Shown here piece by piece: positions 3,621 to 54,200 of a stretch of 64,000 nucleotides of DNA; position 1 is the stretch's first letter, and each line of letters begins with the position of its first letter. The notes under the pieces were generated by a model. That model was not told the DNA's origin. It did no database searches and saw nothing but the letters and a program-made list of their open reading frames with translations. A program made the position numbers and the translations under genes. Source of the DNA: Anaeramoeba ignava BMAN (taxonomy: Eukaryota; Protista; Anaeramoebae); assembly GCA_028826165.1 (NCBI GenBank), contig JAPDFW010000061.1, positions 62,001 to 126,000 of the forward strand. The letters are read 5' to 3'.

Positions 3621-15749
<12,129 letters not shown>

Positions 15750-21819: not shown

Positions 21820-22325
21820 TTGAATTTGATTTTGAATTGATTTTGATTTTGATTTTGATTTTGATTTTGATTTAATTTGATTTTGAATTTGATTTTTGAA
21901 TTTGATTTTTGAATTTGATTTTTGAATTTGATTTTGATTTTGAATTTGATTTTGATTTTGATTTTGATTTTGATTTTGATTTAAATTTTGAATTTGATTT
22001 TGAATTTGAATTTGAATTTGAATTTGATTTTGATTTTAATTTTGATTTTGATTTTGTTTCTGATTTTGATTTTGATTTTGATTTTGATTTTGATTTTATT
22101 TTTTGTTTTGATTTAAATTTTGATTTTAATTTTGATTTTGATTTTGATTTTGATTTTGATTTTTTGATTTTGATTTTGATTTTGATTTTGATTTTGATTT
22201 TGATTTTGATTTTGAATTTGAATTTGATTTTGATTTTGACTTTGAATTTGAATTTGATTTTGATTTTGACTTTGAATTTGAATTTGATTTTGATTTTGAT
22301 TTTCATTTTGATTTTGAATTTGATT
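21820..22325. repeat. (GATTTT/GAATTT)n array at the left edge of duplicated block 2
   Basis: Directly visible. Confidence 0.9.
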
Positions 22326-22329
22326 ATAT

Positions 22330-24737: not shown

Positions 24738-24768
<31 letters not shown>

Positions 24769-27700: not shown

Positions 27701-30700
27701 GATTTTGATTTTGATTTTGATTTTGATTTTGATTTTGATTTTGATTTTGATTTTGATTTTGATTTTGATTTTGATTTTGATTTTGAATTTCTTTTTCATT
27801 TTGATTTTCAATTTGATTTTGAATTTGAATTTGAATTTGATTTTGATTTTGATTTTCATTTGGATTTTCATTTTGATTTTGATTTTGATTTTCATTTTCA
27901 TTTTGATTTTGATTTTGATTTTCTTTTTCTTTTTGAATTTGAATTTGAATTTTGATAATTTGATTTTGAATACAAATTTGAATAGTTTCAATTAATTTAT
28001 TTTGAATTTTAAAATTATAATTTTTCCATATTTTATAATCAAAAATTAAATATTTTTTAAGTTGTTTTTGAAATTGTTCATTTTCAATATTTTCTTTAAA
28101 TGTTCTTATAATATAATAAATTTGTGTTGAAAAATATTTTGGATGTATTTTTTTAAGTAAAATATTGATTATTTGAAATCCTTGTTTTTCAATCATTTCT
28201 TTTTGTGTTTCAATATCGTTTAATAAATAATCATTAATTATTCTTAAAATTTCTTCAAAAATTAATTTTGTTGAATTTGATTTTGATGTTGATTTTGAAT
28301 TTGATTTTGATTTTGATGTTGAATTTGATTTTGATTTAATTTCTTTTTTAATTCTTTAATTTTTTTATTTTCTTTTTTTTGTTGTTTAAATAATTCATCA
28401 ATTTCAAAAATTAAATAAAAAAATGTTTCAATTCCTCCTAAAAATTTAATAATTTCATTAATATTTGTTGATTTAAATGTTTTGATTGTTTTTATTTTGT
28501 TTGTTTTTTCTTTGATAATATTTTTTGAAATTTCTTCTTGTTGTTGTTGTTTTTTATTTATTTTTCTTAATTCATTCATCATTATTATTGATGGAAATTC
28601 TTGATTTTGATTTAATTGATTTTTGATTTTTTGATTTAATTGATTTTTCATTATTGTAAAATATTGTTTCATTTCAGAAACAGTAATTTTAAAATTTGCA
28701 AATTTTCTAATAATTTCAATAATTTTTTTAAATATTTTGATATTTTGAATTTTGGGAATTAATTTAAGTAAAAATGAAATAATTCCTTTTTCACAAATAT
28801 AATTAATATTTTCTTTTGATTTTTCACTTATTTCTTCAAATATTTTCAAAACTTCAAAAAAAGAAATTTCTTTTTCTTTTTCTATTTCAATTTCATTTTT
28901 CTTTTTCAATTTCATTTTCATTTTCATTTTCATTTTGATTTTGATTTTGATTTTCATTTTCATTTTGATTTTCATTTTGATTTTGATTTTCTAATTCTTT
29001 TTTGAAATTTTGTGAATAAAGTTCTAAAATAATATTAATCATATTTGTATTTTTGATAATAAAATTATTTTTAATTGAAAATTTTCCATTATTAATCATT
29101 AAATCTAAAAGAATTTCAAATATTTCTTTTTTTGGTTTTCTTTTTTCATATTCATAAATTATTTTTACAAATTTTGTTATTGGAATTAATTCTTGAAATT
29201 GTTTCATTAATATTTCATTGTTTTGAATAATTTCTTTAATCATTTTTAATGAAAAATATGTATTATTATTATTATTTTGATCTTCAAAAAATGTTGTTAT
29301 AGTTTGTAATAAATTTGTTTTTAAAAATATTTTTTGAATATTATTTCGATTTTTAGAAATTGATTTTAAACATTCTTCAAAAAGTTTATTCATAAATTTT
29401 TCATTTTCATTTTCATTTTCATTTTCATTTTGATTTTTGGAAAATATTTGTTGGATTAAATAAATAATAAATTGTTGTTCATTTTCTTCTTCATTATTTT
29501 TTACTTTTTCAAAAAATTTTGGAATATTATTTAATGAAAGTTTTTGAAGAAATTGATAATTAATTGATTCAATCAAAAAGTTGATAATATTTGAATTATC
29601 AAAAATAACTTTAATAGATCCATTTTGAAATATTAAATTTAAAATTTCAAAATATAATTCTTTTGTTTTTTCATTTTCATTTTCATTTTCATTTTGATTT
29701 TGATTTTGATTTTGAATTTCAATTTGATTTTGATTTTCATTTTGATTTTGATTTTGATTTTGATTTTGATTTTGATTTTGATTTTGATTTTCATTTTCTT
29801 TAATTAATTTTAATAAATTTTGTTTAATTATTTGAAATCCATTATTTTTAATAATTTTGTTTGATGAAATTTTTGGATTATTTTGAATAATTTCAATTAT
29901 CATTTCTAAAAATTGATTTAATAAAAATAAATTTGAAAATATTTTTGAATTTTTTGAAATTTGATTAAATAAAATTTCATATTCAAAATTATTTTGATAT
30001 TTTATGATAATATTTTTAAGAAAATCAATTAATAATATTTGTAAATTTAAATTCATTTCTTCTAATTCAATCTTTTCTTTTTTTCTTCTAATTAAAATTA
30101 AAATTAAAATTAAAATTAAATTAAAAATTAAAATTAAAATTAAAATAAAAATTAAAATATTTACATTAAAATTATTGATATTTGTTCTGATAAAATAATC
30201 TGAAAAACAAATTTTCCATCCTTCATTTTCCTCAAAAAATTTAATAATTTCTTTATCATCATTGCTATTTTCTTCAATTATCATTTTTTTAAATTCAAAT
30301 AAAATATACATTTGAAGTTCTGGATAAATATATTTGTTATATTTTTGAATTTTCTTAATTTTTTCTTGTTTTAAATAATTATGATTTTTGTATTTATATT
30401 GAAGATTTGAATTTAATTCTTCTTCAGTTTTAAATAAATCAAAATAAATTAAAATTAATCTTTCTTTAAAATTATTCACTTTTAATTTAATTTCATTTGT
30501 ATATTTTTCAATTTCTTTTCTTATATTTTCTTTTGATAAATTTATATTATTTGATTTTTGTATTTTTTGAAAAGATCTTAAATGACTAAAAAGTGAATCA
30601 AAATAAGGATGATATAATTTGATTTCTGAAATTTTTCTTTTTGAATTTGATTTTGAATTTGTATTTAAATTTGATTTTGAATTTGATTTTGATTTTGATT

Positions 30701-33700
30701 TTGAATGATGCTTTGAATTTAAATTTAAATTTGATTTTAATTTTGATTTTGAATTTGTATTTAAATTTGATTTTGATTTTGATTTTGATTTTGAATTTGA
30801 TTTTGATTTTGATTTTGATTTTTTTGAATTTGAATTTGATTTTGATTTTGATTTTGAATTTGGTTTTGATTTTGATTTTGATTTTGAATTTGGTTTTGAT
30901 TTTGATTTTGATTTTGATTTTGATTTTGATTTTGATTTTGAATGATGTTTTGAATGATGCTTTGAATGATGCTTTGGATGATGTTTTAAATTTGAATGTG
31001 AATTTGAATTTGAATTTGATTTTGATTTTGATTTTGATTTTGATTTTGATTTTGAATGATGTTTTGAATTGAAATGGATTAATTTTTTTAATTTATTTGA
31101 TAATTTTGTTTTAAAAGAATAAGAAATCCAAAGAATAAAATCTTTAAGATTTAAAATATTATTGTTATTAATAAATTCTTCAATAATATTTTCTTCTTCA
31201 ACAATAAAACTAAGGAAATCAAAAATATTTAATCGAAAATCAACTTCTAAACGAATTAAATCTTCTTTTTTGATTTTTAAATTTTCTAAAATATTTGGAT
31301 TTTCTTCTTCTTTGATTTCTGATTTGAATGTAAAAAAATTTGTTTCAAAAATATCTTCAAGTTTTTCAATTTCTATTTTTTTAATTTTTTCATTTTCTTT
31401 TTGATTTTCAATTTTGATTTGATTTTTGTTATTAATATTAATTCCAATATTTGGAATATTTGATAATTTTGGAACTTCAAAAAAAGTTAAAAGAGTTAAA
31501 ATTAAATCAATTTTTTCTGTTTCTGTTAATAATCCATATTCATAACAACTTTCAATAATTTCAAAAATTGATAATTGAATAGAATATTGTTTTTTTGTAA
31601 AAAGAAATTCTTTTTTGAATTCTAAATTAAATGAAAACCAATCTATTTTTGTTATTTTTGTTATTTTTGTTATTTTTGTTATTTTAAGATTAAAAGAATA
31701 ATTAATTATAAATTTATTTTATATATTTTTTTTTGGGAAATATTTTTACATATTAATGAAGAGATTATTTTTGATTCTTTAATTGATTTTAAAATTTTTC
31801 TATTTGGATAAAAATCTTTTACTTTTAAAAAATTTTTCATAATTTCCATAATTTCTGAAATAATAAATTGAGTTTCAATTAAATAATAAATTGAAAGTTT
31901 TGGTTTTGTTTCCTTTTTTGGTTTTTTTTTAAAGAATAAATAAATTTGAAATTTTTTAAAATTTTGGATTAATTGATAAGTATTAATATAAATATAATTA
32001 TTATTATTTTCTTTTTTCTTTTTATTTGATTTTAATTTTGATTTACTCTTATTTTTTCCATTAATCCAAAAATATATTTTGTAGTTTGTAATAAATCATA
32101 AAATATTGCAAAAATTCTTTTTTCAAATAAAATTTGTTGATTAAATTTGGATTTTGAAAGAATTGAAATTATAGATAAAGAAATTAAATTTTTGTGTGGA
32201 TTAATTTCTTTTTGATTTTCATTTTCAATTTGATTTTGATTTAAATTTTGGTTTTGATTTTGATTTTGATTTTCATTTTGAATTTCATTTTGATTTTGAT
32301 TTTGATTTTGATTTTGAATTTGAATTTCATTTTGAATTGTTTCTATTTTGTTTGAATTCAAGTTTTTTGTTTTTAAATATTAAAAATTTAGTTTATTTTT
32401 TTTTTGGATAATAAAATATATATAAACCTCGAAGAAGAGTATTTGAATAAATTAAATTATTTAATATAAAAGTAATAAATCTTATTGGATGCGCTTGTTT
32501 TTGTGAAATTGCTTCATTAATTTCTTCTAATTCAAAATATTTTTCAAATTCATTCTTTTTTTGATTTAAATTTGATTTATTTTGATTTGGATTCCAATTT
32601 TGAAATAATTTTTCAAATAATAAACAAAATTCAACAAATTCTTCACTTTTTATCTTTTTAAATTTTAATTTTAGTTTTAATTTTGATTTTGATTTTGATT
32701 TTAATTTTTAATTTTAATTTTGATTTTAATTTTTAATTTTTAATTTACTTCTGAATTATTTTTTGGTTGTAAATCTTTCCATTTTTGATAAATTTCATTT
32801 TCATTTTCATTTTCATTTTCATTTTCATTTTCATTTCTAAAACTCAAAAAAAAATCTTTTTCAATTTCTTTTTGTTTTTCAATTTCTTTTTCATTTTCAT
32901 CTTCTGTTTTTGTATTTAAATCTGTTGTTATTTCTTCTTTTGCCTTATTACTGGTATATTTTTGTACTTTTTCAATTTCATTTTGAATATTTTTGATTTG
33001 TGGATCAATTTTTGAATAAAATTCATTTTTTCTTTTTTCAAATTGATTTTTAAATTTTTGAATTATTTTTTCAATTTCATTTAAAGTTTCATTTTTAATT
33101 TTAATTTCTTGAATTTTGATTTTTCAATTTTTTTAAATTTATTTTTGAATTTAATTCTATTTTTTGATTTCTTGAATAATTTTTATCTAAATTTTCATTT
33201 TCAATTTGATTTTGATTTTTGTTGAATTTTGATTAAATTTTGATTTTTGATTTTTCGTTTTTCAAATCCTTTTTAAATTTTGATTTTGTTTTTTCAAATA
33301 ATTTTAAATCTTTTGTGTTTTTAATTTGGGAAGTTTCAGTTTAATTTTTGATATTTTTGTATCAATTTCTTTCAAATTTATATTCTTTCTTTTTAAATTT
33401 ATTTTGAATTTCTTGAATTTTTGAAAATTTTTAAGTCTTGTTTTCTATTTTGCTCAAATAATTCTTTCAATTTAATAATCATTTATTAAATTCTTGTAAA
33501 TACTTTTTCATTTTTCATCATTTTGAATTAATTGTTGAAATTTTTCAATTTCTTTCCCATTTTTGATATTCTTTTGAATTCGAATTTGGTTTTTAATTTT
33601 TCCAATTTTCATTTTCATTTTGTTTCGCATTTTCATTTTTCATTTTTGATTTTAATTTGTTTATTAATGTTGATAAATTTGAGATTCTGTTTTTATTTTC

Positions 33701-34661
33701 TTTTTCAAATTTTCAATTTTGATTTTTAATTTTGAATTTTGATTTTGATTTTGAGAGTTTTGATTTATTTTTGATTTTGAATTTGAATTTGAAATTGATT
33801 AATTGATTTTGATTTTGTGAATTTGATTTAATAAATTTGAAAAGAATTTTTTTCAATTTATTTTCATTTTGATTTTGATTTATTTTTTCAATATTTTTTA
33901 AAGCTTTTTGATTATTTTGGTTTAATTTTTGTTTAATTTGTTGAATATTTGTTTGAAGAAATTCAATATTTTGAAATTCTTTTTGCAAATTTCACAAATA
34001 AATTTTAAGTCTCAATAAAATTGAATAATAATTTGATTTTGATTTTGATTTAAATATTCCATCAAAATTTGGATTTGAAATGATAAATTGAATATTTTGG
34101 AAAAAAATGATAAAAATTTTGAAGATTTTTTTTGAATTAATTTTTTGAGATTTAAAAATAAATTTCTAAAATATTTTCAGAATCGAAATTTGATTGAATT
34201 TCAAGTTCAAAATTTTTCTTTGAATTTCTTTTTAATTTAATTTCGTTTGCAAATTGAAAATATTCATCAAATTTTTTTTTTGTTTTATCAAAATAAAAAT
34301 TATTTTTTCATTATAAAAATTTAATAATTGGTTTAAAAATTTCAGAACTAAAATTATTAAAAAAATTGAATTAAATTTCTTGTTTTTCATTTTCATAAAA
34401 TATTTTGAACGATTCTAAAATTGATTTATGACAAGGAATTAAAAATTTATCTTTTCCACAATAAATTTGAAATTTTGATTTTTTTTCATTTCCAATTTTA
34501 AACCAATTTGATTTTATTTTTGTTTTATTTTGATTTTGATTAAATTTTTTAATTTCGGATTGAATTTCTTCATTTTCATTTTGATTTTGATTTTGATTTT
34601 GAATTTGATTTTGATTTTGATTTTGATTTTGATTTTGATTTTGATTTTGATTTTGATTCAT
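22330..34661 (-). pseudogene. BTB-...-PH-BEACH-WD40 gene, copy 2. Several frameshifts, and the BTB/coiled-coil part at ~33100-34540 is heavily degraded (pseudogene or consensus error)
   Basis: Collinear and near-identical to 3600-15749 with the same intron positions. PH-BEACH-WD40 is intact in ORF 22910-24691. Breaks near 22930, 24800-24990, 27520, 28350 and 28900. Confidence 0.7.
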
Positions 34662-35024
34662 GATCTGTTGAATTTTTAAAAGAAAATTAAAATTGTGTTT
34701 AATAAGAAATTTTCAATTATTTTGATTTCAAAAAATATTTTTATTAAATGTTTAATTTCTAATTTTATATTTTTATTATTTAAATTATTTATATTTAATC
34801 AATTTAAAAAAACAGGAAAAAAATTATTTTTGAATTATTTTTGAATTATTTTGAATTATTTTGAATTTGACTTTTTCATTATTTTAATTAGGAAAAGTAT
34901 TTTATTAATTTTTTATTTCTTACTTTAATAAAAAAGTTTTTAAAAAAAAAGAGAAAAAAATGAAAAAAAAAAAGGAAAAAAAATATTTTTTTATTTTTTT
35001 GGAATTTTGTTTTTAATTAAAAAA

Positions 35025-37760
35025 TTAAACATTTTTCTTTCTTTTTTTCTTCTTTTTGAAATTTTTTTTATTTTGATTTTGATTTTGATTTTGATTTTTA
35101 AATTTTTTAATTAATAAATCAAATAAATTTGGATTTGTTTGATTTAATTGAAAATAATCAATTCCAATTTTTAATTCATTAATTATTTCTTGTGTAATTT
35201 GAATTTCATCTTTAATTTGATTTGAATAAATCCAATATTCAAATATTTGAAATGATTCATTACTTAATTCACTATAATCTGTAACTTTATTAGATTTATC
35301 TTCTGTTACAGATAAAAACATTCCTCGATATAATTCACTTCTCATTATTAATATTAATTTTGGAAATTTATATTGTTTTTCTTTTCTTTCAATTATAAAA
35401 TCTTTTTCATTTTCATTTTCATTTAAATAAATTCTTTTAATTGTTTCTTCAATTTTTTCATTTGAATTTATAATTTCTTTAATTTCTGAATATAATTTTG
35501 GATTTATTTTGGAATTGTTTGAATAAATCATTTCAAATATTTGATTTGATTCTTTAATTGATTTATTTGAAATAATTTCTTGAAGTTTTTCAATTTGATT
35601 TTCATTTTGATTTAATCTATATTTCAATATTAATTTATGAGCTTCAATTATTTCTCCATTTTCGGTTTTAAATGAAATATCACAAAATTCTTTTCTTCTT
35701 CAAATAATTTTATCAAATCTTCTTCAAGATTGGAAAAAGAAGGAGGAGAATAATAAAGAAATGAATTGAATTCTCCACAAGAAATATGATAATTAGAAAT
35801 ATTTTCATTAAATCTTAATTTAGGAAGTTCAATTTGAATTGGAATTCTGATGTATTCCTGAAAGATTTGAGTTTCCTCCATCCCGATTTGACCAAAAGAA
35901 TTATCTCCAAATCCAATCATTTTCTTATTGAAAGTTAAAATCAAAGTATGAAATCCTCCACAAGAAATTTCAAGAATATTATCACTATCAAATAAAAATA
36001 TATCCATTTCTGTAAATTTTTTTGTGGATTCTTCTGGTTTATTTAATCCATTGAAACCTGAATTTCCACATGAATAAAGTTTTCTTTTTGGATTTTGATT
36101 TTGATTTTGATTTTGATTTTGATTTTGAATTTGATTTAAATTTTGATTTTGATTTTGATTTAAATTTTGATTTTGAATTTGATTTTGAGTTTGAATTTGA
36201 TTTTGATTTTGATTTTGATTTTGATTTTGATTTTGATTTTGATTTTGATTTTGATTTTCATTTTGATTTTGATTTTGATTTTGATTTTGATTTTGATTTT
36301 GAATTTGATTTAAATTTTGATTTAAATTTTGATTTTGATTTTGATTTTGATTTTGATTTTGATTTTGATTTTGATTTTGATTTTGATTTTGATTTTGATT
36401 TTGATTTTGATTTTGATTTTGATTTTGATTTTGATTTTGATTTTGATTTTGATTTTGATTTTGATTTTGATTTTGATTTTGATTTTGATTTTGATTTTGA
36501 TTTTGATTTTGATTTTGATTTTGAGTTTGAATTTTGATTTTGATTTTGATTTTGATTTTGATTTTGATTTTGATTTTGATTTTGATTTGAATTTTGATTT
36601 TGATTTTGATTTTGATTTTGATTTTGATTTTGATTTTGATTTTGAATTTGAATTTGAATTTGATTTTGATTTTGATTTTGATTTTGATTTTGATTTTGAT
36701 TTAAATTTTGATTTTGATTTTGATTTTCAATTTGATTTTCCATTTCATTTTGATTTTGATTTTGAATTTCATTTTGATTTTGATTTTGATTTTGATTTTG
36801 ATTTTGATTTTGATTTTGATTTTGATTTTGATTTTGATTTTGAATTTGATTTTGAATTTGAATTTGATTTTGAGTTTGAATTTGAGTTCGATTTTCATCT
36901 TCAATCAGCATGGCTGAAAAATTGTTTCCACATTGAATATCAATTATTTTACCTTTTGGAATATTTTGGATTTTGGTTAATTTCGAGAAACGTGAAGTCT
37001 GAATTGATTCTCCTAATCCAAGTTGACCATAATAATTATATCCGCATCCAAATAATTCTTGATTTAAATTTAAAAGAAAAACATGAATTGAAGAATTTCC
37101 TGAAAATATTTTAGAAATATTTTTCATCATTAAAATTGGTTTTTTTGTTTTATTAGGCTTATTCAAACCAAGTTGACCAAAATAACTATCACCAATTCCA
37201 TAAGCATTTTGATTTGAAGTTAATAAGTAAATTGAACTAGAACCAGAAACAATATCTTGAATTACTCTATCATTTTTATCTTCAATTAATGATGAAATAT
37301 TGATAAATTTTTTTGGATTTTTTGGATTAATATTTTTTCCTTTGGCAAATACATTTCCTTCTTTTGTTAAAATAGCTTCATTATAATAACCAACAGCTAC
37401 TTTTTGAATATTTTTAATTTGGATTTTTTCCACATTTAGAATTGAATTATTTTCATTTAAATATTCTATTGCTTTTCCATTTTTGAAAAGGAAAATTGTT
37501 GAGAAATGTCCTGTTGAAATTTGTTTAATTTGTTTTTCATTTTCATTTTCATTTTCATTTTCATTTTCATTTTCATTTTTTTCATTTTCATTTTCATTTT
37601 CATTTTCATTTTCATTTTCATTTTCATTTTCATTTTCATTTTCATTTTCATTTTCATTTTCATTTTCAAATTTAAATTGAATTGGGTTTGTTATTTTATC
37701 TGGTTTATTTTTTATAAGTTTTGGATATTTATTGTAACCAAAAAATAAGCAATCATTCAT
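35025..37760 (-). CDS. RCC1-repeat beta-propeller + C-terminal tandem BTB-like protein, paralogue A. Frameshifts near 36530 and 35700, and a ~800-bp NQ insertion
   Basis: RCC1 blades IKQISTG, GDSYFGQLG, GCGYNYYGQLGLG, ISCGGFHTLIL, GFGDNSFGQIG. BTB-like EAHKLILKYR and KDFIIERKEKQYKFPKLILIMRSELYRGMF. Confidence 0.8.
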
Positions 37761-38150: not shown

Positions 38151-39880
38151 TAATTTTGATTATTAAATTTATTAATTAATAAATCAAATAAATTTGGATT
38201 TGTTTGATTTAATTGAAAATAATCAATTCCAATTTCTAATTCTTGAATGATTTCTTGTGTAATATTCAAATATTTGAAATGATTTATTACTTAATTCACT
38301 ATAATCTGTAACTTTATTTGAATTATCATTTGTTACAGATAAAAACATTCCTCGATATAATTCACTTCTCATTATTAATATTAATTTAGGAAATTTATAT
38401 TTCTTTTCATTTCTTTCAATTATAAAATCTTTTTCATTTTCATTTTCATTTAAATAAATTCTTTTCATTGTTTCTTCAATTTTTTCATTGGAATTTATAA
38501 TTTCTTTAATTTCAGAATATAGTTTTGGATTTATTTTGGAATTGTTTGAATAAATCATTTCAAATATTTGATTTGATTCTTTAATTGATTTTTTTGAAAT
38601 AATTTCTTGAAGTTTTTCAATTTGATTTTCATTTTCATTTTGATTTAATCTATATTTTAATATTAATTTATGAGCTTTGATTATTTCTCCATTTTCTGTT
38701 TTAAATGAAATATTACAAAATTCTTTTCTTTCAAATAATTTTATCAAATCTCCTTCAAGATTGGAAAAAGAAGGAGGAGAATAATAAAGAAATGAATTAT
38801 TTTCTGAACAAGAAACATGATAATTGGAAATATCTTCATTAAATCTTAATTTAGGAAGTTCAATTTGAATTGGAATTAATTGTGTATTTCTATCTCCAGT
38901 TCCTAATTGAGCTATAAGAATTTTTTCCAAATCCTATCATTTTCTTATTGAAAGTTAAAATCAAAGTATGAGCATTTCCAACAGAAAAATCAAGAATATC
39001 ATCATCTTCTTCAAATAAAGATGATTTGATTTCAGTAAATTCGTGAACATGTTTATTTTTGCCAAGTCCGTTTAATCGATGATCTCCGCATGAATAAATT
39101 TTTCTTTTTTGATTTTCAATTTCAATCAACATTATTGAATGATTAAATCCAGATTGAATATCAATTATTTTGCCTTTTGGAATATTTTGGATTTTGGTTA
39201 ATTTTTTGATTTCTTTTATTCTTGATTCTCCCAATCCAAGTTGACCATATTGATTATTTCCACATCCAAATAATTCTTGATTTGAATTTAAAAGAAAAAC
39301 ATGAATTGAAATATTTCCTGAAAATATTTTAGAAACATTTTTCATCATTAAAATTGGTTTTTCTGTTTTTTTGAGTGTTTCAGAATCAAAACCAAGTTCG
39401 ACCATCTTGATTTGAACCAATTCCATAAGCATTTTGATTTGAAGTTAATAAATAAATTGAATTATCTCCAGAAACAATATCTTCAATTATTCTATCATTT
39501 TTATCTTCAATTAATGATGAAATATTGATAAATTCTTTTGGATTTTGTGGATTAATATTTTTTCCTTTGGCAAATACATTTCCTTCTATTGTTAAAATAG
39601 CTTCATTCCAAGAGCCAACAGTTACTTTTTGAATATTTTCTTCAATTTGGATTTTTTGAGGATTTTGATTTGAATATCTTAAGTATTCTATTGCTTTTCC
39701 ATTTTTAAAAAGGAAAATTGTTGAATAATTTCCTGATGAAATTTGTTTAATTTGTTTTTCATTTTCATTTTCATTTTCATTTTCAAATTTAAATTGAATT
39801 GGAGTAGGATTATGGAAAGAAAATTTGTATTCTGTGAATGAAAGTAAATTATTGAAACCAAAAATCCAAACATCATTCAT
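38150..39880 (-). CDS. RCC1-repeat + BTB-like protein, paralogue B. Frameshifts near 39400, 38925 and 38260
   Basis: ORFs 39386-39880, 38890-39432 and 38223-38930 join into a collinear paralogue of A: GCGNNQYGQLGLG, SVGNAHTLIL, EFCNISFKTENGEIIKAHKLILKYR. Ends ...LLINKFNNQN* at 38150. Confidence 0.8.
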
Positions 39881-39934: not shown

Positions 39935-40520
39935 TATATTTAAAATTAAATTATAAAAATAAAAAATATATTTAAATAAAATTATAAATTTATTAATAAT
40001 ATTTAATTATTTTTATTATTTAAATTAATTTGAAATAAAATCAAAAAATAAAATTAAATAAAATAAATTTAATTATTAATATTTATTAATTAAAATATTT
40101 TTATTCCACTTTTTTTTTGAATTAAAAAATATATTTAAAATTAAATTATATTTATTAATAATATTTAATTATTTTTATTATTTAAATTAATTTGAAATAA
40201 AATCAAAAAATAAAATTAAATAAAATAAATTTAATTATTAATATTTATTAATTAAAATATTTTTATTCCACTTTTTGAATTAAAAATATATTTAAAATTA
40301 AATTATATTTATTTATAATATTTAATTATTTTTATTATTTAAATTAATTTGAAATAAAATCAAAAATAAAATTAAATAAAATAAATTTAATTATTAATAT
40401 TTATTAATTAAAATATTTTTATTCCACTTTTTTTTGAATTAAAAAATATATTTAAAATTAAATTATATTTATTAATAATATTTAATTATTTTTATTATTT
40501 AGATTAATTTGAAATAAAAT
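39935..40520. repeat. Satellite family B (~160 bp), ~3-4 copies
   Basis: TTCCAC marker at about 40104, 40266 and 40422. Same unit as 42775-45295. Confidence 0.88.
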
Positions 40521-40554
40521 CAAAAAAAAATAAAAAAAAAGATAAAAAAAATAA

Positions 40555-40627
40555 CTCTCGGGGGAGGGCTCGAACCTCCAACCTTTTGATTAACAGTCAA
40601 ACGCGCTGCCGATTACGCTACCCAAGA
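40555..40627 (-). tRNA. tRNA-Asn(GTT), copy 1
   Basis: Reverse complement is TCTTGGG TA GCGTAATCGGCAGCGC G TTTGA CTGTTAA TCAAA AGGTT GGAGG TTCGAGC CCTCC CCCGAGA G: full cloverleaf, anticodon GTT, followed by a T-run terminator. Confidence 0.97.
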
Positions 40628-40829
40628 TATTTTAATTAATAATTTAATTTAAATTATTTTTTTTTTCTTATTTTTTTTTTTAAAAAATTTATATTATTAA
40701 TTTAAAAATTTTTTATTTTTTTTTATTTATTTTTTTTTAATTAATTTTTATTCATTTTTTTTCATTTTTTCTTACTTATTAATTATTATTTATTCCATTT
40801 AATTCATTTTTTATCATTTTTTTTAAATT

Positions 40830-42775
40830 AATTTTCAAATTAAATATTAATTAAATATTAATTTATTTTTGATTAAAATATTTATTCCACTTTTTTTTAT
40901 TTAAATTAATATAAATTATTTTAATAATAAATATTAAATATTAATTAAATATTTTTTTGTTTTGAATTATTTATTAATTATTTTCAAATTAAATATTAAT
41001 TAAATATTAATTAAATTTTGATTAAAATATTTATTCCACTTTTTTTATTTAAATTAATATAAAATATTTTAATAATAAATAATAAATATTAATTAAATAT
41101 TTTTTTGTTTTGAATTATTTATTAATTATTTTCAAATTAAATATTAATTAAATATTAATTAAATATTAATTTATTTTTGATTAAAATATTTATTCCACTT
41201 TTTTTATTTAAATTAATATAAATTATTTTAATAATAAATATTAAATATTAATTTAAATATTTTTGTTTTGGATTATTTATTAATTATTTTCAAATTAAAT
41301 ATTAATTAAATATTAATTAAATATTTATTTATTTTTGATTAAAATATTTATTCCACTTTTTATTTAAATTAATATAAATTATTTTAATAATAAATATTAA
41401 ATATTAATTAAATATTTTTTGTTTTGGATTATTTATTAATTATTTTAATAATAAATATTAATTAAATATTAATTAAATATTTATTTATTTTTGATTAAAA
41501 TATTTATTCCACTTTTTTTTATTTAAATTAATATAAATTATTTTAATAATAAATATTAAATATTAATTAAATATTTTTGTTTTGGATTATTTTCAAATTA
41601 TTTTCAAATTAAATATTAATTAAATATTAGTTAAATATTAATTTATTTTTGATTAAAATATTTATTCCACTTTTTTATTTAAATTAATATAAATTATTTT
41701 AATAATAAATATTAAATATTAATTAAATATTTTTTTGTTTTTGGATTATTTATTAATTATTTTAATAATAAATATTAATTAAATATTAATTAAATATTAA
41801 TTTATTTTTGATTAAAATATTTATTTCACTTTTTATTTAAATTAATATAAATTATTTTAATAATAAATATTAAATATTAATTAAATATTTTTTGTTTTGA
41901 ATTATTTATTAATTATTTTCAAATTAAATATTAATTAAATATTAATTAAATATTAATTTATTTTTGATTAAAATATTTATTCCACTTTTTATTTAAATTA
42001 ATATAAATTATTTTAATAATAAATATTAAATATTAATTAAATATTTTTATTTTTGAATTATTTATTAATTATTTTCAAATTAAATATTAATTAAATATTA
42101 GTTAAATATTAATTTATTTTTGATTAAAATATTTATTCCACTTTTTTTTATTTAAATTAATATAAATTATTTTAATAATAAATATTAAATATTAAGTAAA
42201 TATTTTTTTATTTTTGGATTATTTATAAATTATTTTCAAATTAAATATTAATAAAATATTAATTAAATATTAATTTATTTTTGATTAAAATATTTATTCC
42301 ACTTTTTTTTATTTAAATTAATATAAATTATTTTAATAATAAATATTAAATATTAATTAAATATTTTTTGTTTTGGATTATTTAATAATTATTTTCAAAT
42401 TAAATATTAATTAAATATTAATTAAATATTAATTTATTTTTGATTAAAATATTTATTCCACTTTTTATTTAAATTAATATAAATTATTTTAATAATAAAT
42501 ATTAAATATTAATTAAATATTTTTTTATTTTGAATTATTTATAAATTAATTCCAAATTAAATATTAATTAAATATTAATTAAATATTTATTTATTTTTGA
42601 TTAAAATATTTATTTCACTTTTTTTTATTTAAATTAATATAAATTATTTTAATAATAAATATCAAATATTAATTAAATATTTTTTTATTTTGAATTATTT
42701 ATTAATTATTTTCAAATTAAATATTTATTAAATATTAATTAAATATTAATTTATTTTTGATTAAAATATTTATTC
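40830..42775. repeat. Satellite family A (~157 bp), ~12 copies
   Basis: TATTCCAC(T)n marker at about 40885, 41035, 41193, 41351, 41507, 41665, 41824, 41980, 42136, 42297, 42456, 42613 and 42773. Confidence 0.92.
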
Positions 42776-45295
42776 CACTTTTTGAATTAAAAATATAATT
42801 AAAATTAAATTATATTTATTAATAATATTTAATTATTTTTATTATTTATATTAATTTGAAATTAAATCCAAAAATAAAAATTAAATAAAATAAATTTAAA
42901 TATTAATATTTATTTATTAATTAAAATATTTTTATTCCACTTTTTTTTGAATTAAAAATATATTTAAAATTAAATTATATTTATTAATAATATTTAATTA
43001 TTTTTATTATTTATATTAATTTGAAATAAAATAAAAATAAAATTAAATAAAATAAATTTAATTATTAATATTTATTTATTAAAAATATTTTTATTCCACT
43101 TTTTTTGATTAAAAAATATACTTAAAATTAAATTATATTTATTTATAATATTTAATTATTTTTATTATTTAAATTAATTTGAAATAAAATAAAAATAAAA
43201 TTAAATAAAATAAATTTAATTATTAATATTTATTTATTAAAATATTTTTATTCCACTTTTTTTGAATTAAAAAATATATTTAAAATTAAATTATATTTAT
43301 TAATAATATTTAATTATTTTTATTATTTAGATTAATTTGAAATAAAATCAAAAAATAAAATTAAATAAAATAAATTTAATTGTTAATATTTATTTATTAA
43401 AATATTTTTATTCCACTTTTTGAATTAAAAATATATTTAAAATTAAATTATATTTATTAATAATATTTAATTATTTTTATTATTTAAATTAATTTGAAAT
43501 TAAAATCCAAAAAATAAAATTAAATAAAAATAAATTTAATTATTAATATTTATTTATTAAAATATTTTTATTCCACTTTTTGAATTAAAAATATATTTAA
43601 AATTAAATTATATTTATTTATAATATTTAATTATTTTATTATTTAGATTAATTTGAAATAAAATCAAAAATAAAAAATAAAATTAAATAAAAATAAATTT
43701 AATTATTAATATTTATTTAATTAAAATATTTTTATTCCACTTTTTTTGAATTAAAAAATATAATTAAAATTAAATTATATTTATTAATAATATTTAATTA
43801 TTTTTATTATTTATATTAATTTGAAATAAAATCCAAAAATAAAATTAAATAAAATAAATTTAAATATTAATATTTATTAATTAAAATATTTTTATTCCAC
43901 TTTTTTTGAATTAAAAATATAATTAAAATTAAATTATATTTATTAATAATATTTAATTATTTTATTATTTAAATTAATTTGAAATAAAATCCAAAAATAA
44001 CAAAATAAAATAAATTTAATTATTTATATTTATTATATTAAAATATTTTTATTTTAATTATTTTTATTTTTTAAATTAAAAATAAATTTAAAATTAATAA
44101 ATTAAAATATTTTTATTCCATTAAAAATATTATTTATTATTTTTATTATTTAGATTAATTTGAAATAAAATCAAAAATAAAATTAAATAAAAAATAAATT
44201 TAAATATTAATATTTATTTAATTAAAATATTTTTATTCCACTTTTTTTTGATTAAAAAATATAATTTAAAATTAAATTATATTTATTAATAATATTTAAT
44301 TATTTTTATTATTTAAATTAATTTGAAATTAAAATCAAAAAATGAAATTAAAAAATAAATTTAATTATTAATATTTATTTATTAAAATATTTTTATTACA
44401 CTTTTTTTGGAATTAAAAAATATATTTAAAATTAAATTATATTTATTAATAATATTTAATTATTTTTATTATTTAAATTAATTTGAAATAAAAATCAAAA
44501 ATAAAATTAAATAAAATAAAATTAATTATTAATATTTATTAACTAAAAATATTTTTATTCCACTTTTTTAATTAAAAATATAATTTAAAAATTAAATAAT
44601 ATATTTATTTAATAATATTTAATTATTTTTATTATTTAAATTAATTTGAAATAAAATCAAAAATAAAATTAAATAAAATAAATTTAATTATTAATATTTA
44701 TTAACTAAAATATATTTATTCCACTTTTTGAATTAAAAATATATTTAAAATTAAATTATATTTATTAATAATATTTAATTATTTTTATTATTTAAATTAA
44801 TTTGAAATAAAATCAAAAATAAAATTAAATAAAATAAATTTAATTGTTAATATTTATTTACTAAAATATTTTTATTCCACTTTTTTTTGATTAAAAAATA
44901 TAATTAAAATTAAATTATATTTATTAATAATATTTAATTATTTTTATTATTTAAATTAATTTGAAATAAAATCAAAAATGAAATTAAAAAAATAAATTTA
45001 ATTATTAATATTTATTTATTAAAATATTTTTATTCCACTTTTTTTGAATTAAAAAATATAATTAAAATTAAATTATATTTATTAATAATATTTAATTATT
45101 TTTATTATTTAAATTAATTTGAAATAAAATCAAAAAATAAAATTAAATAAAATAAATTTAATTATTAATATTTATTAACTAAAATATATTTATTCCACTT
45201 TTTTTTGAATTAAAAAATATATTTAAAATTAAATTATATTTATTAATAATATTTAATTATTTTTATTATTTAGATTAATTTGAAATAAAATCCAA
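42775..45295. repeat. Satellite family B (~160 bp), ~15 copies
   Basis: Unit TTCCAC(T)nGAATTAAAAATATA...ATTAATTTGAAATAAAATCAAAAA... recurs about every 160 bp from 42773 to 45193, with one irregular unit near 44050. Confidence 0.92.
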
Positions 45296-45324
45296 AAAAA
45301 TAAAAAAAAAGATAAAAAAAATAA

Positions 45325-45397
45325 CTCTCGGGGGAGGGCTCGAACCTCCAACCTTTTGATTAACAGTCAAACGCGCTGCCGATTACGCTACCCAAGA
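45325..45397 (-). tRNA. tRNA-Asn(GTT), copy 2, identical to copy 1
   Basis: Same 73-nt sequence and flanks, 4770 bp from copy 1. Confidence 0.97.
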
Positions 45398-45594
45398 TAT
45401 TTTAATTAATAATTTAATTTAAATTATTTTTTTTTTCTTATTTTTTTTTTTAAAAAATTTATATTATTTATTTAAAAATTTTTTATTTTTTTTTATTTAT
45501 TTTTTTTTAATTAATTTTTATTCATTTTTTTTCATTTTTTCTTACTTATTAATTATTATTTATTCCATTTAATTTATTTATTTATCATTTTTTT

Positions 45595-46865
45595 AAATTA
45601 TTTTCAAATTAAATATTAATTAAATATTAATTTATTTTTGATTAAAATATTTATTCCACTTTTTTTTATTTAAATTAATATAAATTATTTTAATAATAAA
45701 TATTAAATATTAATTAAATATTTTTTTGTTTTGGATTATTTATTAATTATTTTCAAATTAAATATTTATTAAATATTAATTAAATATTAATTTATTTTTG
45801 ATTAAAATATTTATTCCACTTTTTTTTATTTAAATTAATATAAAATATTTTAATAATAAATAATAAATATTAATTAAATATTTTATTGTTTTGAATTATT
45901 TATAAATTATTTTCAAAATAAATATTAATTAAATATTAATTTATTTTTGATTAAAATATTTATTCCACTTTTTTTTATTTAAATTAATATAAATTATTTT
46001 TAATAATAAATATCAAATATTAATTAAATATTTTTGTTTTGGATTATTTATAAATTATTTTCAAAATAAATATTAATTAAATATTTATTAATTTTAATTT
46101 ATTTTTGATTAAAATATTTATTCCACTTTTTTTTAATTAAATTAATATAAAATATTTTAATAATAAATAATAAATATTAATTAAATATTTTTTTATTTTG
46201 GATTATTTATTAATTAATTCCAAATTAAATTTTAATTAAATATTAATTAAATTTTAATTTATTTTTGATTAAAATATTTATTCCACTTTTTTTATTTAAA
46301 TTAATATAAATTATTTTAATAATAAGTATTAAATATTAATTAAATATTTTTGTTTCGGATTATTTATAAATTATTTTGAAATAAAATATTAATTAAATAT
46401 TAATTAAATTTTAATTTATTTTTGATTAAAATATTTATTCCACTTTTTTTTAATTAAATTAATATAAATTATTTTAATAATAAATAATAAATATTAATTA
46501 AATATTTTTATTTTGGATTATTTATTAATTATTTTCAAATTAAATATTAATTAAATATTTATTTATTTTTGATTAAATATTTATTCCACTTTTTTTTTAT
46601 TTAAATTAATATAAATTATTTTAATAATAAATATTAAATATTAATTAAATATTTTTTTGTTTTGGATTATTTATAAATTATTTTCAAATTAAATATTAAT
46701 TAAATATTTATTTATTTTTGATTAAATATTTATTCCACTTTTTTTTTTATTTAAATTAATATAAATTATTTTAATAATAAATATTAAATATTAATTAAAT
46801 ATTTTTTTGTTTCGGATTATTTATTAAATTATTTTCAAAATTAAATATTAATTAAATATTTATTT
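45595..46865. repeat. Satellite family A (~150-160 bp), ~8 copies
   Basis: TTCCAC marker at about 45654, 45814, 45963, 46121, 46281, 46438, 46584 and 46733. Confidence 0.9.
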
Positions 46866-46919
46866 AAAAATTTGTTTATTTTTATTTATTTTTTATTTAA
46901 AATAATTTAAATTTTTAGT

Positions 46920-49900
46920 TTATTTTTGTCGATTTTGTAAATTGTTTGCAAATTGACTTAAATTACTCAAATTTGTATAAATTTCAGAAAGACTCAAATT
47001 CTCTTTTTGTATTTCAGATTCTTGACTAAGAATATTACTTGCTTTTTCATATTCAGATAACTTAAATTCAATTCTCCATAACATTGAAAAACTTTCTATT
47101 GGATATTTCAATACAAAATTTTGAAACTGATCAGGATATTTTGAATTCAAATCAAAAGTTGAATGAATTTTCTTGTTTTGAATCAAATAACGAAAAACAG
47201 TTTCAGAAAAAAAATTCATTTCTTCTTTTCCATTTTTTTCCAAGTATTTTTCCAAATATTTTCCAACTAATTCAGGCTTTTTTGTATAATCACAAACAAA
47301 AGTAATTGAATCAAAATCTTCATATTTTTCCGACAAAAAAAGGGCTTCTTCTTCTAGTTTCAAGCAAACCAATGATTTTAATATTTTGTGTTTTTTTGGG
47401 ATCAAAACGGGCAAGTTTTCTTTTGTAAATTTCACAAACAAAAAATCACTTAGTGAAACAAATTGTTGAATAAGATCATGAGTTTGAATTTTTTGCAAAT
47501 GATTTCTCTGTTTTTTTTGGAGAGTTTGAATTATTTTTGCTGTTATTTTCCAGCATTTTTTAGCACAAACATTGAATTCGTGAGAAAAAATATATAATTG
47601 ATTCAAATTACTGCTTTGAATTAACTTGAGAAATAGCAGCTCTTCCATATGATCATTACTGAAATTTTTGGGGAAATCTTTCCCTAAATCGGATACATTG
47701 ATATCAAAGAAAAATTCCACAAATCTCAGGTAAAAAGTCTTTCCCACAAAAATGATCAAGAGAATAATTTTGTTTAAATCTTCAATTCTATTGATGTATT
47801 TCTTTTCCAGCCAATCCTTCTTATTTCTCTGAACTGCGTTAATGATTTTGTTGATATTTTTTGTTATTTCACTTGGATTTGCGAAATGAGTCTTTAAAAA
47901 GTCAATATAATTTTGTTTGTTTTTTTTGTTTAAATCAAGATCTAGAATCGAAACCATTTCGTAATAAATGAGATCATTTCTATTTTCATTGAAATGGTTT
48001 AAAATTTGGGAAGTAATTGCAATTTTTTCTTCAAATTCTAAGATTGATTGGATTGTTTTTTGATCCAATTTGGAGAGTAGATTGTATTCTTTCAAAAAAT
48101 CATTCAACAAGAATACATCTTCCAATTTTTTGGATTGTTGGTTTTTCTCGCTGAAGAATTGGCTAATAAAATCGAAAAGTTGTTTATAATTTTGTGTATT
48201 TTCGTTGTTTTCTTTGGATTGTTTAAAAATTTTATGGGATGAAATGATTTTTTGAAGATTTTCTTGGTCGTTATTTTTATAAAGTTGGAAAGCGATATTT
48301 ATTATGTTTTCATTATCACTTTCATTATCACTTTCGATATCACTTTCAATATTAATTTCACTTTCATTTTCATTTTCATTTTCATTTTCATTTTCTTTGA
48401 TTTGATAAACATATTTTTGAGTAACAATAAAAATAGAATCATCAATTTTTTGAGAACCAAGAACAAAATTTTCTTCATTTCCAAAAACAATTTGATCTGT
48501 TTTAACTTCTTTTAAATTTTGAATTGTTGAAGTGATTATAATTTCTGGTGTTGTTATAATTTGAATAAATAAATTCTCTTCTTTTTTTGATTCTAAAGCA
48601 TAAAATTGAAGTTTTTCAAGATTTAGATTAAAATTATTTGGAGGAAAACTCACATAAATTTTGTAATTATTTTGGAAAATAATTTCTTCTTCTTTAAATA
48701 CAAATTGAGCAACAGAAAAATTTTGTTTTTGAAGATCATTTAAAATTTGGAAAAGTATGAAAATATTTTGACTAATCAAAAAAAAAAAAAAAGGAAACCA
48801 AATTTAGAATTAATTTTTTGTTTCCAAAAAAAAAAAAGGAGTTTACTTTAAAATTTGGAAATCAAGAAGTTTGATTTGAGTTTTATCTTTTTCATCTTCT
48901 AAGTTTTGGTTCAATTGATTTGAAATTTGCTTTTTGATGTTAATCTCCCATTTTTTAAGAAGATTTGGTTCTTCTTTTTCCAAATTGAGTTGAAATAATT
49001 GAAAGTCTTTTGATTTCAAAACGAAAATTTGGTTTTGGTTTTGCAAAAGACGAATAATTGGTTGAGAATTTGATTGAGAATTTTGGTCATTTTTTCCAAA
49101 AAAAGGAGATAATAAAAGATTAAATAAATTTTTAAGCAGATTGAGTTTTCCAAATCTATTAATTGAAATTGTAAAAATATTTTCTTTGTTTGATTTCAGA
49201 AAAACGAGGTCTAAATTTCCCAAAGAAGTTCCAAGAAGAATTATTTCTTCATAAATTGTATTATTTTGGGATTTATGATCCAAACAAGAAATTGCGGAAG
49301 TGATTTTTTCTTTTGAATCCAGAATTGATTCTTTTTCTTGAAGATAAACATCTTTGTTTTGATTTTTTTCTTGATTATTTTTTCTTGATTATTTTCTTGA
49401 TTTTTTTCTTGATTTTTTTCTTGATTTTTTTCTTGATTTTTTTCTTGATTTTTTTCTTGATTTTTATTTGATACAAACCAATCTTTAATGTTTCCTGTTT
49501 TTGAAATTAAAAATATGTTTTGAAGTGATTTTGTTTTTTGATTTTGCTTTGTTATTATGGATTTGACTTCGAAATTTTCTTTTTCTTCTTCTTTTTCTTC
49601 TTCATGAAAAATTGAGAAATTGAAAAAGTTTTTCTAGAAGATGTTTTTATAATTTTTTTTTGCAAATTAAAATTAATTTTGAAATTAGTTTAAAAATTTA
49701 AATTGATTTATAAATTGAAATTGATTTATAAATTGAAATTGATTTATAAATTGAAATTGATTTAGAAATTGAAATTGATTTATAAATTGAAATTGATTTA
49801 TAAATTGAAATTGATTTGGAAATTGAAATTGATTTATAAATTGAAATTGATTTGGAAATTGATTTATAAATTGAAATTGATTTAGAAATTAAAATTGATT

Positions 49901-51206: not shown

Positions 51207-54200
51207 ATGGAGAAAGAAAAACAACAACAAAAACAAAAACATTATGGATTTTTATTATTAACGATAATATTTGAAGTAGCAATGCTTGTAATATATGGAT
51301 TATGGATGGATTACGACACATCATATAATCAAGACAGCGGAGAAACAGATGAAAGAGTAGATCTGTTTTATTATTTCTTTATTGACGTTGCAATTATGAT
51401 TTTTGTCGGTTTTGGTTTTTTGATGGTTTTTTTGAAACGTTATGGTTATTCTTCTGCTGGTTATACTTACTTCATTTCTGCTGTTGCTTTCCAATGGGCT
51501 ATTGTTACAAATTCTTTCTTTGCTCAAGCTAATGATTCTTCTTGGGGTAAAGTCGCTTTAAATTTGGAAGTTATGATAGAAGGTCTTTATGCTGCGGCTG
51601 CTGTTCTCATTTCTTTCGGGTATTTTTTTCTTTTTTCTTTTTTCTTTTTTCTTTCTTTTTTATTTTTTTTTCTTAATTAATTTGGAAAAAAAAATTTTTT
51701 TATAATAACTAATTTAAATATATATTTAAATATAAATTTATTTACAAATTTATTTATATGTTTAATTATATATTTATTTATATATTTATTTATAAATTTA
51801 TTTATAAATTTAATTATTAATTTAATTATTAATTTATTTATAAATTTAATTATATATTTATTTATTAATTTATTTACAAATTTAATTATTAATTTATTTA
51901 CAAATTTAATTACAAATTTAATTATTAATTTATTTATAAATTTATTTATTAATTTATTTATTAATTTATTTATAAATTTATTTATAAATTTATTTATAAA
52001 TTTATTTATTAATTTATTTATATATTTATTTATTAATTTATTTATAAATTTAATTATAAATTTAATTACAAATTTAATTACAAATTTAATTACAAATTTA
52101 TTCATTAATTTATTTACAATTTTATTCATTAATTTATTTATTAATTTATTTATTAATTTATAAATAAATTTTAATTATTAATTTAATTATTAATTTATTT
52201 AAATTTAATTATATATTTATTTATTAATTTATTTATTAATTTATTTATTAATTTATTTATAAATTTATTTATTAAATTTATTTATTAATTATAAATTTAT
52301 TTATTAATTTATTTATTAATTTATTTATTAATTTATTTAATTTATTTATAAATTTATTTATTAATTTATTTATAAATTTAATTATATATTTATTTATTAA
52401 ATTTATAAATTTATTTTATAATTTATTTTAATTTAATTAAATTTATTTATAAATTTATTTTAATTTATTAATTTATTTACAAATTTATTTATTAATTTAT
52501 TTATTAATTTATTTATTAATTTATTTATTAATTTATTTATAAATTTAATTATTAATTTATTTAATTATATATTTATTTATTTATTTACTAATTTATTTAT
52601 AAATTTAATTATTTATTTAATTATTTATTTAATTATCAATTTATTTACTAATTTATTTATAAATTTATTTATATTTAATTTAAATTTATTTATATATTTA
52701 ATTATAAATTTATTTACAATTTTATTTACAATTTTTATTTACAATTTTTATTTATAAATTTATTTATTAAATTTATTTATAAATTTATTTATAAAATTAT
52801 TTATAAATTTATTTATTAAATTATTTATAAATTTATTTATAAATTTATTTATTAATTTATTTATTAAATTTATTTATTAATTTATTTACAAATTTATTTA
52901 TTAATTTATTTATTAATTTATTTATAAATTTAATTATAAATTTATTTATAAATTTATTTATTAATTTATTTATTAATTTAATTATAAATTTATTTATTAA
53001 TTTATTTATAAATTTAATTATTAATTTATTTATTAATTTATTTATAAATTTATTTATTAATTTATTTATAAAAAAAGAGCTGTTCTGGGAAAAACAACAC
53101 CAACACAACTTCTCATAATGACATTTTTCGAGTTAATATTTTACAGCTTAAATTATTATATCGGATTCCTTAAAGTACAAGCAGTTGACATTGGAGGATC
53201 AATGATTATTCATGCATTTGGAGCATTTTTCGGAGTTTCAGTTACAACAGTACTTACTTCTCGAAAAGAAACAAAGGATCACAAATTAAATGGATCTTCT
53301 TATACTTCAGATTTGTTCTCTCTTCTTGGAAGCATTTTCTTGTGGATTTTCTGGCCTAGTTTTAATGCTGCTCTTGCTGAACCTGGTGCTCAATATCGTG
53401 CTGTTATTAATACAACTCTTTCTTTAACAGCTTCTTGTTTAATGGCTTTTGTTGTTTCTTCGATTTTCCATCACGGTAAATTTGATATGGTTGATATCCA
53501 AAATGCTACTTTAGCTGGTGGTGTTGCTGTTGGTTCAAGGTTTGTTATATTCATAAATTTTTATATATTTATTTTTTTGAACTTTTCAAATTATTGGAAA
53601 TTTTTCGATTAAAAATTTTTCCTTTCACATTTTTTTGGAAAATTTTTCTGATTTTTTTTATTTTTAATTAAAAATTTTTTAGTGCTGATTTAGTTATTAA
53701 TCCTGTTGGTGCTTTTTCTTGTGGTTTAGCTGGTGGTTTTGTTTCAACTCTTGGATTCTCTTATTTCGCTTCAAAAATTACTAAAATTTTTGGAATTCAA
53801 GATACTTGTGGTGTTCAATTGTAAATCAAACAATTTAATTTTAAATCAAACAATTTATTTCAAATTAAACAATTTAAATAATTTAATTTAATTTAATTTA
53901 ATTTAATTTAAATCAAATAATTTAATTTAATTTAATTTAATTTAATTTAAATCAAATAATTTAATTTAATTTAATTTAATTTAATTTAATTTAATTTAAT
54001 TTAATTTAATTCAATTTATTTTAAATCAAACAATTTATTTTAAATCAAATAATTTAATTCAAATAATTTAATTCAAAAAATTTAATTTAATTTAAATTCA
54101 ATTCAATTTAATTAGTTTACATGGATGGCCTGGAATTATTGGAGGAATTGCTTCATCAATTGCAATCGCAAGAGCAAAAAATCACAGAGATCCTTATTTA

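Follow-up and report, generated by a model that had tools for sequence, protein, structure and literature searches.

The tRNA-Asn block of Anaeramoeba ignava, a free-living anaerobic metamonad, occupies positions 39960-46883 of the 64,000-nucleotide stretch analyzed here (the window; positions 62001-126000 of contig C62 in a 147-contig, 42.8-Mb assembly). It is best explained as a compound tRNA-Asn locus in which each of two predicted RNA polymerase III (Pol III) genes lies between two private, non-coding satellites of nucleosome length, satellite A on its 5' side and satellite B on its 3' side. Satellite arrays adjoin most of the tRNA genes sampled across the assembly, and the block is a large two-sided example of this genome-wide pattern, combined with one recombination event. 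We assign a probability of about 0.65 to this explanation as a whole, that is, to the compound locus together with the genome-wide pattern and the crossover that would have duplicated the tRNA gene.

Two tRNA-Asn genes and their private satellites

ARAGORN and Rfam both located exactly two tRNA genes in the window, at 40555-40627 and 45325-45397. Both are minus-strand tRNA-Asn genes with the anticodon GTT, they are 100% identical to each other, and they lie exactly 4,770 bp apart, which is the length that a first-pass annotation of this DNA had given for the macro-unit. Each scores 66.7 bits against Rfam RF00005 (cut-off 29) and is predicted to be functional from its cloverleaf score, its GTT anticodon, a terminator T-run and an A(n)TAAGAA element at -54.

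Mapping with nhmmer, seeded with one unit of each satellite family, resolved the block into the order B (~3.6 units), tRNA-Asn(GUU), 188-bp linker, A (~12.5 units), B (~16 units), tRNA-Asn, linker and A (~8 units), and Tandem Repeats Finder (TRF) reported 158-160-bp arrays across the same interval with scores of 4,000-4,500. The first B array (39960-40526, units of ~160 bp) was matched over 39989-40526 as three full units and one truncated unit, the latter adjoining the tRNA gene. Between this array and the gene lies a 3' flank (40527-40554, minus strand) that, in the tRNA sense, has T-runs resembling a Pol III terminator immediately past the gene. On the 5' side of the gene, the linker (40628-40815, minus strand) carries the A(n)TAAGAA element at 40665-40682 and, near 40790, a degenerate copy of a short box that recurs once in each ~158-bp unit of the adjoining A array (40816-42762; 12 units matched over 40832-42699, continuing to a junction at ~42785). 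Past the A-to-B junction box at 42763-42783, the second B array (42784-45297; 15 matches over 42792-45297) includes a degenerate stretch at ~43905-44135. It is followed by the second tRNA gene, a second linker (45398-45585, minus strand) that is 99% identical to the first and carries the A(n)TAAGAA element at 45435-45452, and the second A array (45586-46883; 8 units matched over 45597-46821, with the end at ~46865).

The block spans the entire spacer between two minus-strand genes, from the start codon of an RCC1-BTB gene (39880) to the stop codon of a 619-aa open reading frame (ORF; 46920-48779), with the second A array ending ~37 bp short of that stop codon. No ORF of 100 aa or more was found between 39880 and 46920, and the G+C content at 40-46 kb is 4.3-6.4%, compared to a window mean of ~15%. 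The monomers are non-coding, arranged head to tail and 93-100% identical from unit to unit in substitutions, as expected of satellite DNA; the arrays measure 0.6-2.5 kb and lie amid active-looking genes, and are thus not long heterochromatic arrays of tens of kilobases or more. Collectively, ARAGORN, Rfam, TRF, nhmmer and the ORF scan bear out the first-pass annotation, which had described a protein-gene-free block of ordered satellites around identical tRNA-Asn genes, with B on the 3' side and a linker plus A on the 5' side of each. Its description of A and B as two different families stands insofar as they show no significant similarity beyond the box (z = 1.5 in global and 2.3 in local comparison), and requires amendment in that a box of ~21 nt is common to both. 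The same scores rule out A and B as diverged halves of one satellite divided by the tRNA gene.

Both satellites are confined to the vicinity of tRNA-Asn genes. Across the whole assembly, A was found at 88% identity or higher only in this block, and B at 89% or higher only in three places on C62, namely the two copies described here and an array that stops 32 bp short of another tRNA-Asn gene, the third, at a distance of 45.7 kb; a weak match to B (81-83%) was also present at C76:223-224 kb. Neither family matched elsewhere in the window with nhmmer. BLAST matches to A at ~75% identity on many contigs were dismissed as composition noise plus the box, and composition-aware nhmmer detected no A unit at 20 other tRNA loci (no match at E 1e-3 or below). 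When the 73-nt gene was used as query, only three tRNA-Asn genes were recovered from the 42.8-Mb assembly, the third differing by one base in the T loop. The possibility raised at first pass that the distribution of A and B is unrelated to tRNA genes is therefore not borne out. The notion of a dedicated tRNA-Asn amplifier, also put forward there, is weakly supported: the satellites would have provided the homology for a duplication, but there are only three genes and the net gain is one copy.

Satellites at tRNA genes across the assembly

We sampled 10 kb around each of 20 tRNA loci, taken from the best-scoring hits of a genome-wide Rfam search, and analyzed these sequences with ARAGORN, Rfam and TRF. 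A tRNA gene was scored as array-adjacent when an AT-only array with a period of at least 100 bp lay within 300 bp of it, and 2,239 positions more than 3 kb from any tRNA served as controls. By this measure, 19 of the 23 dispersed tRNA genes were array-adjacent (12 of 16 paralogue groups), compared to 7.5% of the controls (P = 3e-18 for genes and 5e-11 for groups), indicating that other tRNA isotypes do carry their own satellites, a point that the first-pass annotation had singled out for checking. Arrays covered 53-57% of the first 800 bp upstream of tRNAs and 19-31% of the first 1.6 kb downstream, with a background of about 8% or less beyond ~4 kb on either side. The adjacent array was upstream in 10 groups and downstream in 4, and it started 4-60 bp upstream of many tRNAs. 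The units at the sampled genes were 143-171 bp long, or dimers or trimers of such lengths. No array accompanied tRNA-Thr, one tRNA-Cys (Cys2), one tRNA-His or a tRNA with the anticodon CUA, and copies of the same isoacceptor differed in array presence (His versus His2, Cys versus Cys2).

Two of the sampled loci merit separate description. At L012:8962-9069 (C1:603461-603568, minus strand), Rfam (51.2 bits), but not ARAGORN, detected a 108-nt tRNA that contains an intron. An array with boxes and a period of 163/325 bp begins ~100 bp upstream of this gene and is more than 3.5 kb long; the array was first taken for tRNA-free, until the intron-containing tRNA was detected. At L017:4937-5007 (C71:170836-170906, minus strand; 67.1 bits), a tRNA with the anticodon CTA would read UAG, although long ORFs under standard stop codons are otherwise seen in A. 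ignava. This gene has neither a flanking satellite nor the A(n)TAAGAA upstream element.

Most of the satellite families share a box of 15-21 nt, TTTATTCCACTTTTT, with a few conserved bases flanking it on each side, and this box is the only segment conserved between different families. Exact copies number 2,725 in the genome compared to 1 for the reversed control. In the sample, the box was present in 10/11 tRNA-adjacent array groups and in 0/8 non-adjacent groups, and its GTGGAA strand coincided with the sense strand of the tRNA in 12/14 oriented arrays. Elsewhere in the genome, the spacing between boxes ranges from 36 to 196 bp. Single boxes also occur in spacers and in intron 2 of an LCAT gene, where the variant TTGTTCCACTTTTTTTT lies at window ~17500-17520 on the minus strand, ~45 nt before the 3' splice site. 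Conservation within arrays gives no sign of selection on the box either way, as all columns are ~93% conserved. A role as a Pol II initiator was ruled out, given that the box occurred in 0/92 of the 60-nt stretches upstream of long ORFs, compared to 23% for TCATTTT, and derivation from the tRNA A or B box was discarded since neither matched. A metagenome scan for two boxes 130-160 bp apart returned only L021, an unrelated contig of 63% G+C with a low-complexity CATTCC-type tail, and a 45% G+C contig of another eukaryote (P0004/L022) contained no tRNA and no array.

When the arrays were compared by BLAST at a minimum of 80% identity and 100 nt, matches of 91-97% were found only within isotypes (Trp/Trp2, Glu/Glu2, Gln/Gln3, Lys/Lys2 and Asn/Asn3), while all other pairs were at ~80%, the noise level for such base composition. 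Because such matches are restricted to single isotypes, we conclude that a tRNA gene is copied along with its satellite; each group of tRNA paralogues possesses a satellite family of its own, and the family accompanies the gene through duplication. At one tRNA-Trp locus (L007:5059-8837, on C59), the first 21 nt of the tRNA recur as 11 extra copies within a 320-bp upstream repeat, and we therefore conclude that this array grew from the gene's own flank. At least some arrays arose in place, by tandem duplication of the tRNA 5' flank. An array that still carries a piece of its source gene offers a natural system for the study of satellite birth.

Origin in place must be weighed against the possibility that the arrays are what remains of a tRNA-targeting mobile element, akin to Dictyostelium TRE and DGLT-A or yeast Ty1 and Ty3, or of a non-autonomous carrier of the Helitron or miniature inverted-repeat transposable element type, with the box as its recognition site or terminus. 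Such an element would be expected to scatter box copies by the thousand, singletons and the intronic one among them, and to leave arrays that start within tens of base pairs (4-60 bp) upstream of many tRNAs, and Helentron-type elements of oyster are known to carry satellite-like arrays (PMC7492417). However, no coding capacity was seen within or next to the arrays, the families are private to tRNA paralogue groups with nothing in common outside the box, and the array that holds a piece of its own tRNA points to local duplication. Nor was one element family found at many different tRNA genes, as matches occur within isotypes only and B was present among the 20 other loci only at the third tRNA-Asn. 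No terminal repeats or target-site duplications have come to light, though no search was aimed at them. A mobile origin is, on this evidence, very unlikely.

Three further observations concern the composition of arrays. At window 18157-19465, a private 144-bp AT-only satellite (9 copies, 94% matches, 3.9% G+C) separates the LCAT gene from a 718-aa ORF; it contains neither a box nor a tRNA, and no relative was found in the other sampled loci. The tRNA T-arm word GTTCAATTCC recurs every 200-300 bp at C6:36216-38722, C11:9562-12212 and C11:87993-89316, and these may be either arrayed tRNA-like genes or satellites with a piece of a tRNA 3' end. The idea that arrays are strings of cloned introns with 3-nt exons was rejected upon reading of the A unit, because its plus strand has no AG, its minus strand has no workable GT...AG frame, and no variable 3-nt slot was seen.

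The sampled loci also pointed to a candidate Pol III upstream promoter element. The motif A(n)TAAGAA(A)n begins 35-57 nt upstream of 17/23 dispersed tRNA genes, compared to 4% of random AT-only 100-mers. It was absent from a cluster of tRNA-like genes on C104 and from the CUA tRNA.

Proposed recombination and origin of the arrays

The two macro-units of the tRNA-Asn block are colinear only over 39958-42125 versus 44731-46886 (93-95% identity), because their array copy numbers differ. The tRNA gene and linker are 99-100% identical between the two copies, and the A and B units that adjoin the tRNA are mutual best matches across the macro-units, likewise at 99-100%. The switch from A to B (42763-42783) falls within the ~21-nt sequence common to both families, AAAATATTTATTCCACTTTTT, with A-type sequence on its left and B-type sequence on its right. 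Given that the junction lies inside the shared box, we read the macro-repeat as the product of one unequal crossover that duplicated the tRNA gene. In such an event, a box of the A array would have exchanged with a box of the B array on a misaligned sister or homologue, joining B-tRNA-A to B-tRNA-A. The crossover would have duplicated all sequence between the boxes, including the tRNA gene with its promoter and terminator, and raised the tRNA-Asn count from 2 to 3, and array copy numbers would have been altered afterwards. A single unequal exchange appears to be the simplest history of the macro-repeat, and it would imply that two of the only three tRNA-Asn genes in this Asn-rich organism trace to a crossover between satellites.

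It is highly improbable that the 4.77-kb duplication, or the lengths of the arrays, were instead made by the long-read assembler. While the differences between units are mostly homopolymer indels, as expected of nanopore-type errors, the two copies are distinguished by substitutions and by the number of units in their arrays, the A-to-B junction occurs only once, and the block lies well inside a 550-kb contig (550,774 bp). Moreover, assemblers usually collapse repeats rather than expand them, and a third, diverged module of tRNA-Asn plus B is present 45.7 kb away.

The genome-wide Rfam search also revealed at least six other pairs in which two tRNA genes with equal scores lie on the same strand, 1.3-3.4 kb apart (C65:496456/498423, C144:71300/72852, C77:381534/384466, C68:354454/357816, C66:34223/35559 and C67:246216/247856), which may be further macro-duplications of a tRNA plus its satellite. 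At C115:469999-472371 (L004), one box-bearing 162-bp array of 12 units lies between two tRNA-Arg(TCT) genes that are identical and point toward each other; in this inverted duplication, both genes share the one satellite.

Transfer RNA genes are chromatin boundaries, fork-pause sites and transposon targets, and those of yeast act as barriers and pause replication forks with TFIIIB and TFIIIC bound. With moderate confidence, we favor the reading that the arrays arise by local tandem duplication at the break-prone, selection-tolerant flanks of Pol III-bound genes. Genes bound by Pol III and TFIIIB would be hot spots for breaks or template switching, through a fork-barrier and break mechanism drawn from yeast biology, and their flanks would also tolerate expansion. 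By analogy with yeast tRNA genes, the binding of TFIIIB and TFIIIC, fork pausing and insulation would be plausible reasons why tRNA flanks are special, although we know of no satellite formation at the yeast genes. The box itself is a candidate recombination-prone site and is probably bound by a protein, a view that we also hold with moderate confidence. That it is the cis-site of a dedicated DNA-binding or nicking protein, which would seed nucleosome-length arrays beside Pol III genes and shift tRNA copy number through box-to-box exchange, is rather unlikely; if true, a deep-branching eukaryote would possess a chromatin and recombination system linked to tDNA that has not been described before.

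The main rival to local duplication is a selected role of the arrays as insulators or spacers. A protein bound to the box once per nucleosome-length unit would phase the arrays, which would serve as insulation between Pol III genes and the closely packed Pol II genes or would organize tDNA in the nucleus, and the arrays would be kept by selection rather than arising as by-products. Such a role would account for the conservation of the box across otherwise unrelated families, the clustering of units at 143-171 bp or dimers of these lengths, the consistent placement of GTGGAA on the tRNA sense strand and the occupation by the block of the full spacer between two minus-strand genes. It is harder to reconcile with the unequal presence of arrays among His and Cys isoacceptors, with the tRNA genes that have no array (Thr, Cys2, His and CUA), with the variable box spacing elsewhere in the genome and with the 93-100% likeness of units, which indicates that the arrays are young. 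We consider a selected role possible but doubtful.

The first-pass annotation had also proposed a centromere or boundary domain. A centromeric or pericentromeric domain with tRNA genes at its edges, as known from fission yeast, would fit the resemblance of AT-only satellites of nucleosome length with a conserved box to CENP-B-box satellites. Arrays of the same kind and size, however, are present at ~12 sites on the 1.8-Mb contig C1 and on most contigs among the matches listed, at least three lie on C62, the block's own contig, and the largest single array in the block measures only 2.5 kb. There is thus no single such domain per chromosome; a contig has many sites with box arrays, and no more than about one third of the arrays adjoin a tRNA. 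Since the arrays are too many and too small, we do not read the block as a centromere, and a centromeric role is extremely unlikely.

Several points weigh against duplication at tRNA flanks and a single crossover as a full account of these data. The polar pause in yeast lies at the gene itself and would not alone predict the 5' bias seen here, and the tRNA sample (23 dispersed genes in 16 paralogue groups) was drawn from best-scoring hits and is not exhaustive. All four of the arrays picked by closely spaced boxes had no tRNA within 1.5 kb and were bounded by coding-like DNA, and on C1 a tRNA-type B box lay within ~0.6 kb at only ~4/12 box clusters, a count that rests partly on a B-box pattern serving as a proxy for tRNAs (the pattern detects 19/21 known tRNAs). 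Box arrays without tRNAs imply that the satellites are not a tRNA-only feature. Furthermore, the array sizes in the block do not fit one clean crossover, because the second B array is larger than the first and the first A array is larger than the second, so that later expansion or contraction must be assumed, and both the duplication and the unit counts derive from one long-read assembly.

Known systems and other features of the window

One of the closest comparisons is with Entamoeba, in which the tRNA genes lie inside the tandem unit, with up to 5 per unit and microsatellite-like repeats between genes, in arrays that make up more than 10% of the genome (PMC2652664). As in Entamoeba, an AT-rich amoeboid protist has its tRNA genes tied to tandem repeats, in array families that are tRNA-specific. 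In contrast, a single-copy gene in Anaeramoeba adjoins a separate satellite of 143-171 bp, with no more than two or three copies of the gene. In the tRNA-Asn block, the 158-160-bp units contain no tRNA sequence and are not microsatellite-like, and the block holds two copies of the gene, out of three in the genome. The comparison to Entamoeba made at first pass is therefore no more than an analogy, as the tRNA gene here lies outside the short repeat unit.

Dispersed euchromatic satellite-like arrays with units of ~170 bp have been described in Tribolium (PMC4675708) and, borne by Helentrons, in oyster (PMC7492417). The arrays of Anaeramoeba resemble these in being short, of nucleosome length and spread through gene-rich DNA beyond heterochromatin; unlike those of oyster, they show no sign of a carrier transposon. 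To our knowledge, arrays of the Tribolium and oyster type have no reported tie to tRNA genes or to a box common to private families.

In CENP-B-box satellites, a short box occurs once per ~160-170-bp unit of otherwise fast-evolving sequence. The Anaeramoeba arrays likewise have one conserved, presumably protein-binding box per unit, but they are non-centromeric, are found at hundreds of small loci and vary in box spacing. Dictyostelium TRE5, TRE3 and DGLT-A and yeast Ty1 and Ty3 are retroelements targeted to tRNA genes. The likeness to these elements is that repeats pile up tens to hundreds of base pairs from tRNA genes, mainly upstream, in a compact genome; the arrays described here differ in having no coding capacity or shared element family, and appear to be local tandem duplications.

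In the published literature, we found no description of tRNA-linked satellites of nucleosome length, nor of a genome whose tRNA genes mostly have private satellites with one common box, and the A. ignava genome paper makes no mention of tRNA genes, satellites or tandem repeats (PMC11550330). What is new is the tie between the box and tRNA-adjacent arrays, the box as the likely crossover point of the macro-repeat, the confinement of A and B to the only three tRNA-Asn genes, and the A(n)TAAGAA element. These findings bear on what draws repeats to Pol III genes and on the way in which tRNA copy number changes through repeats, and the box provides a handle for finding a new DNA-binding factor in metamonads.

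Outside the block, the LCAT-family ORF at window 16495-17325 is 100% identical to an NCBI protein of A. ignava, and the LCAT search gave no protein of Anaeramoeba flamelloides. The 619-aa neighbor of the block (46920-48779) had no match in a homology search. A segmental duplication of ~12.6 kb (3020-15664 versus 21791-34676, 86-94% identity) contains large minus-strand genes rich in coded hexamer repeats. Two minisatellites are also present, one with a 17-bp unit repeated 109 times at 60151-62002 (G+C ~8%, with a strong skew of C over G) and one with a 12-bp unit repeated 115 times at 51711-53072. Finally, the RCC1-BTB gene beside the block (38223-39880, minus strand) is split into three overlapping ORFs, while its paralogue at 36258-37760 is continuous, and the split may reflect either pseudogene frameshifts or homopolymer errors in the assembly.

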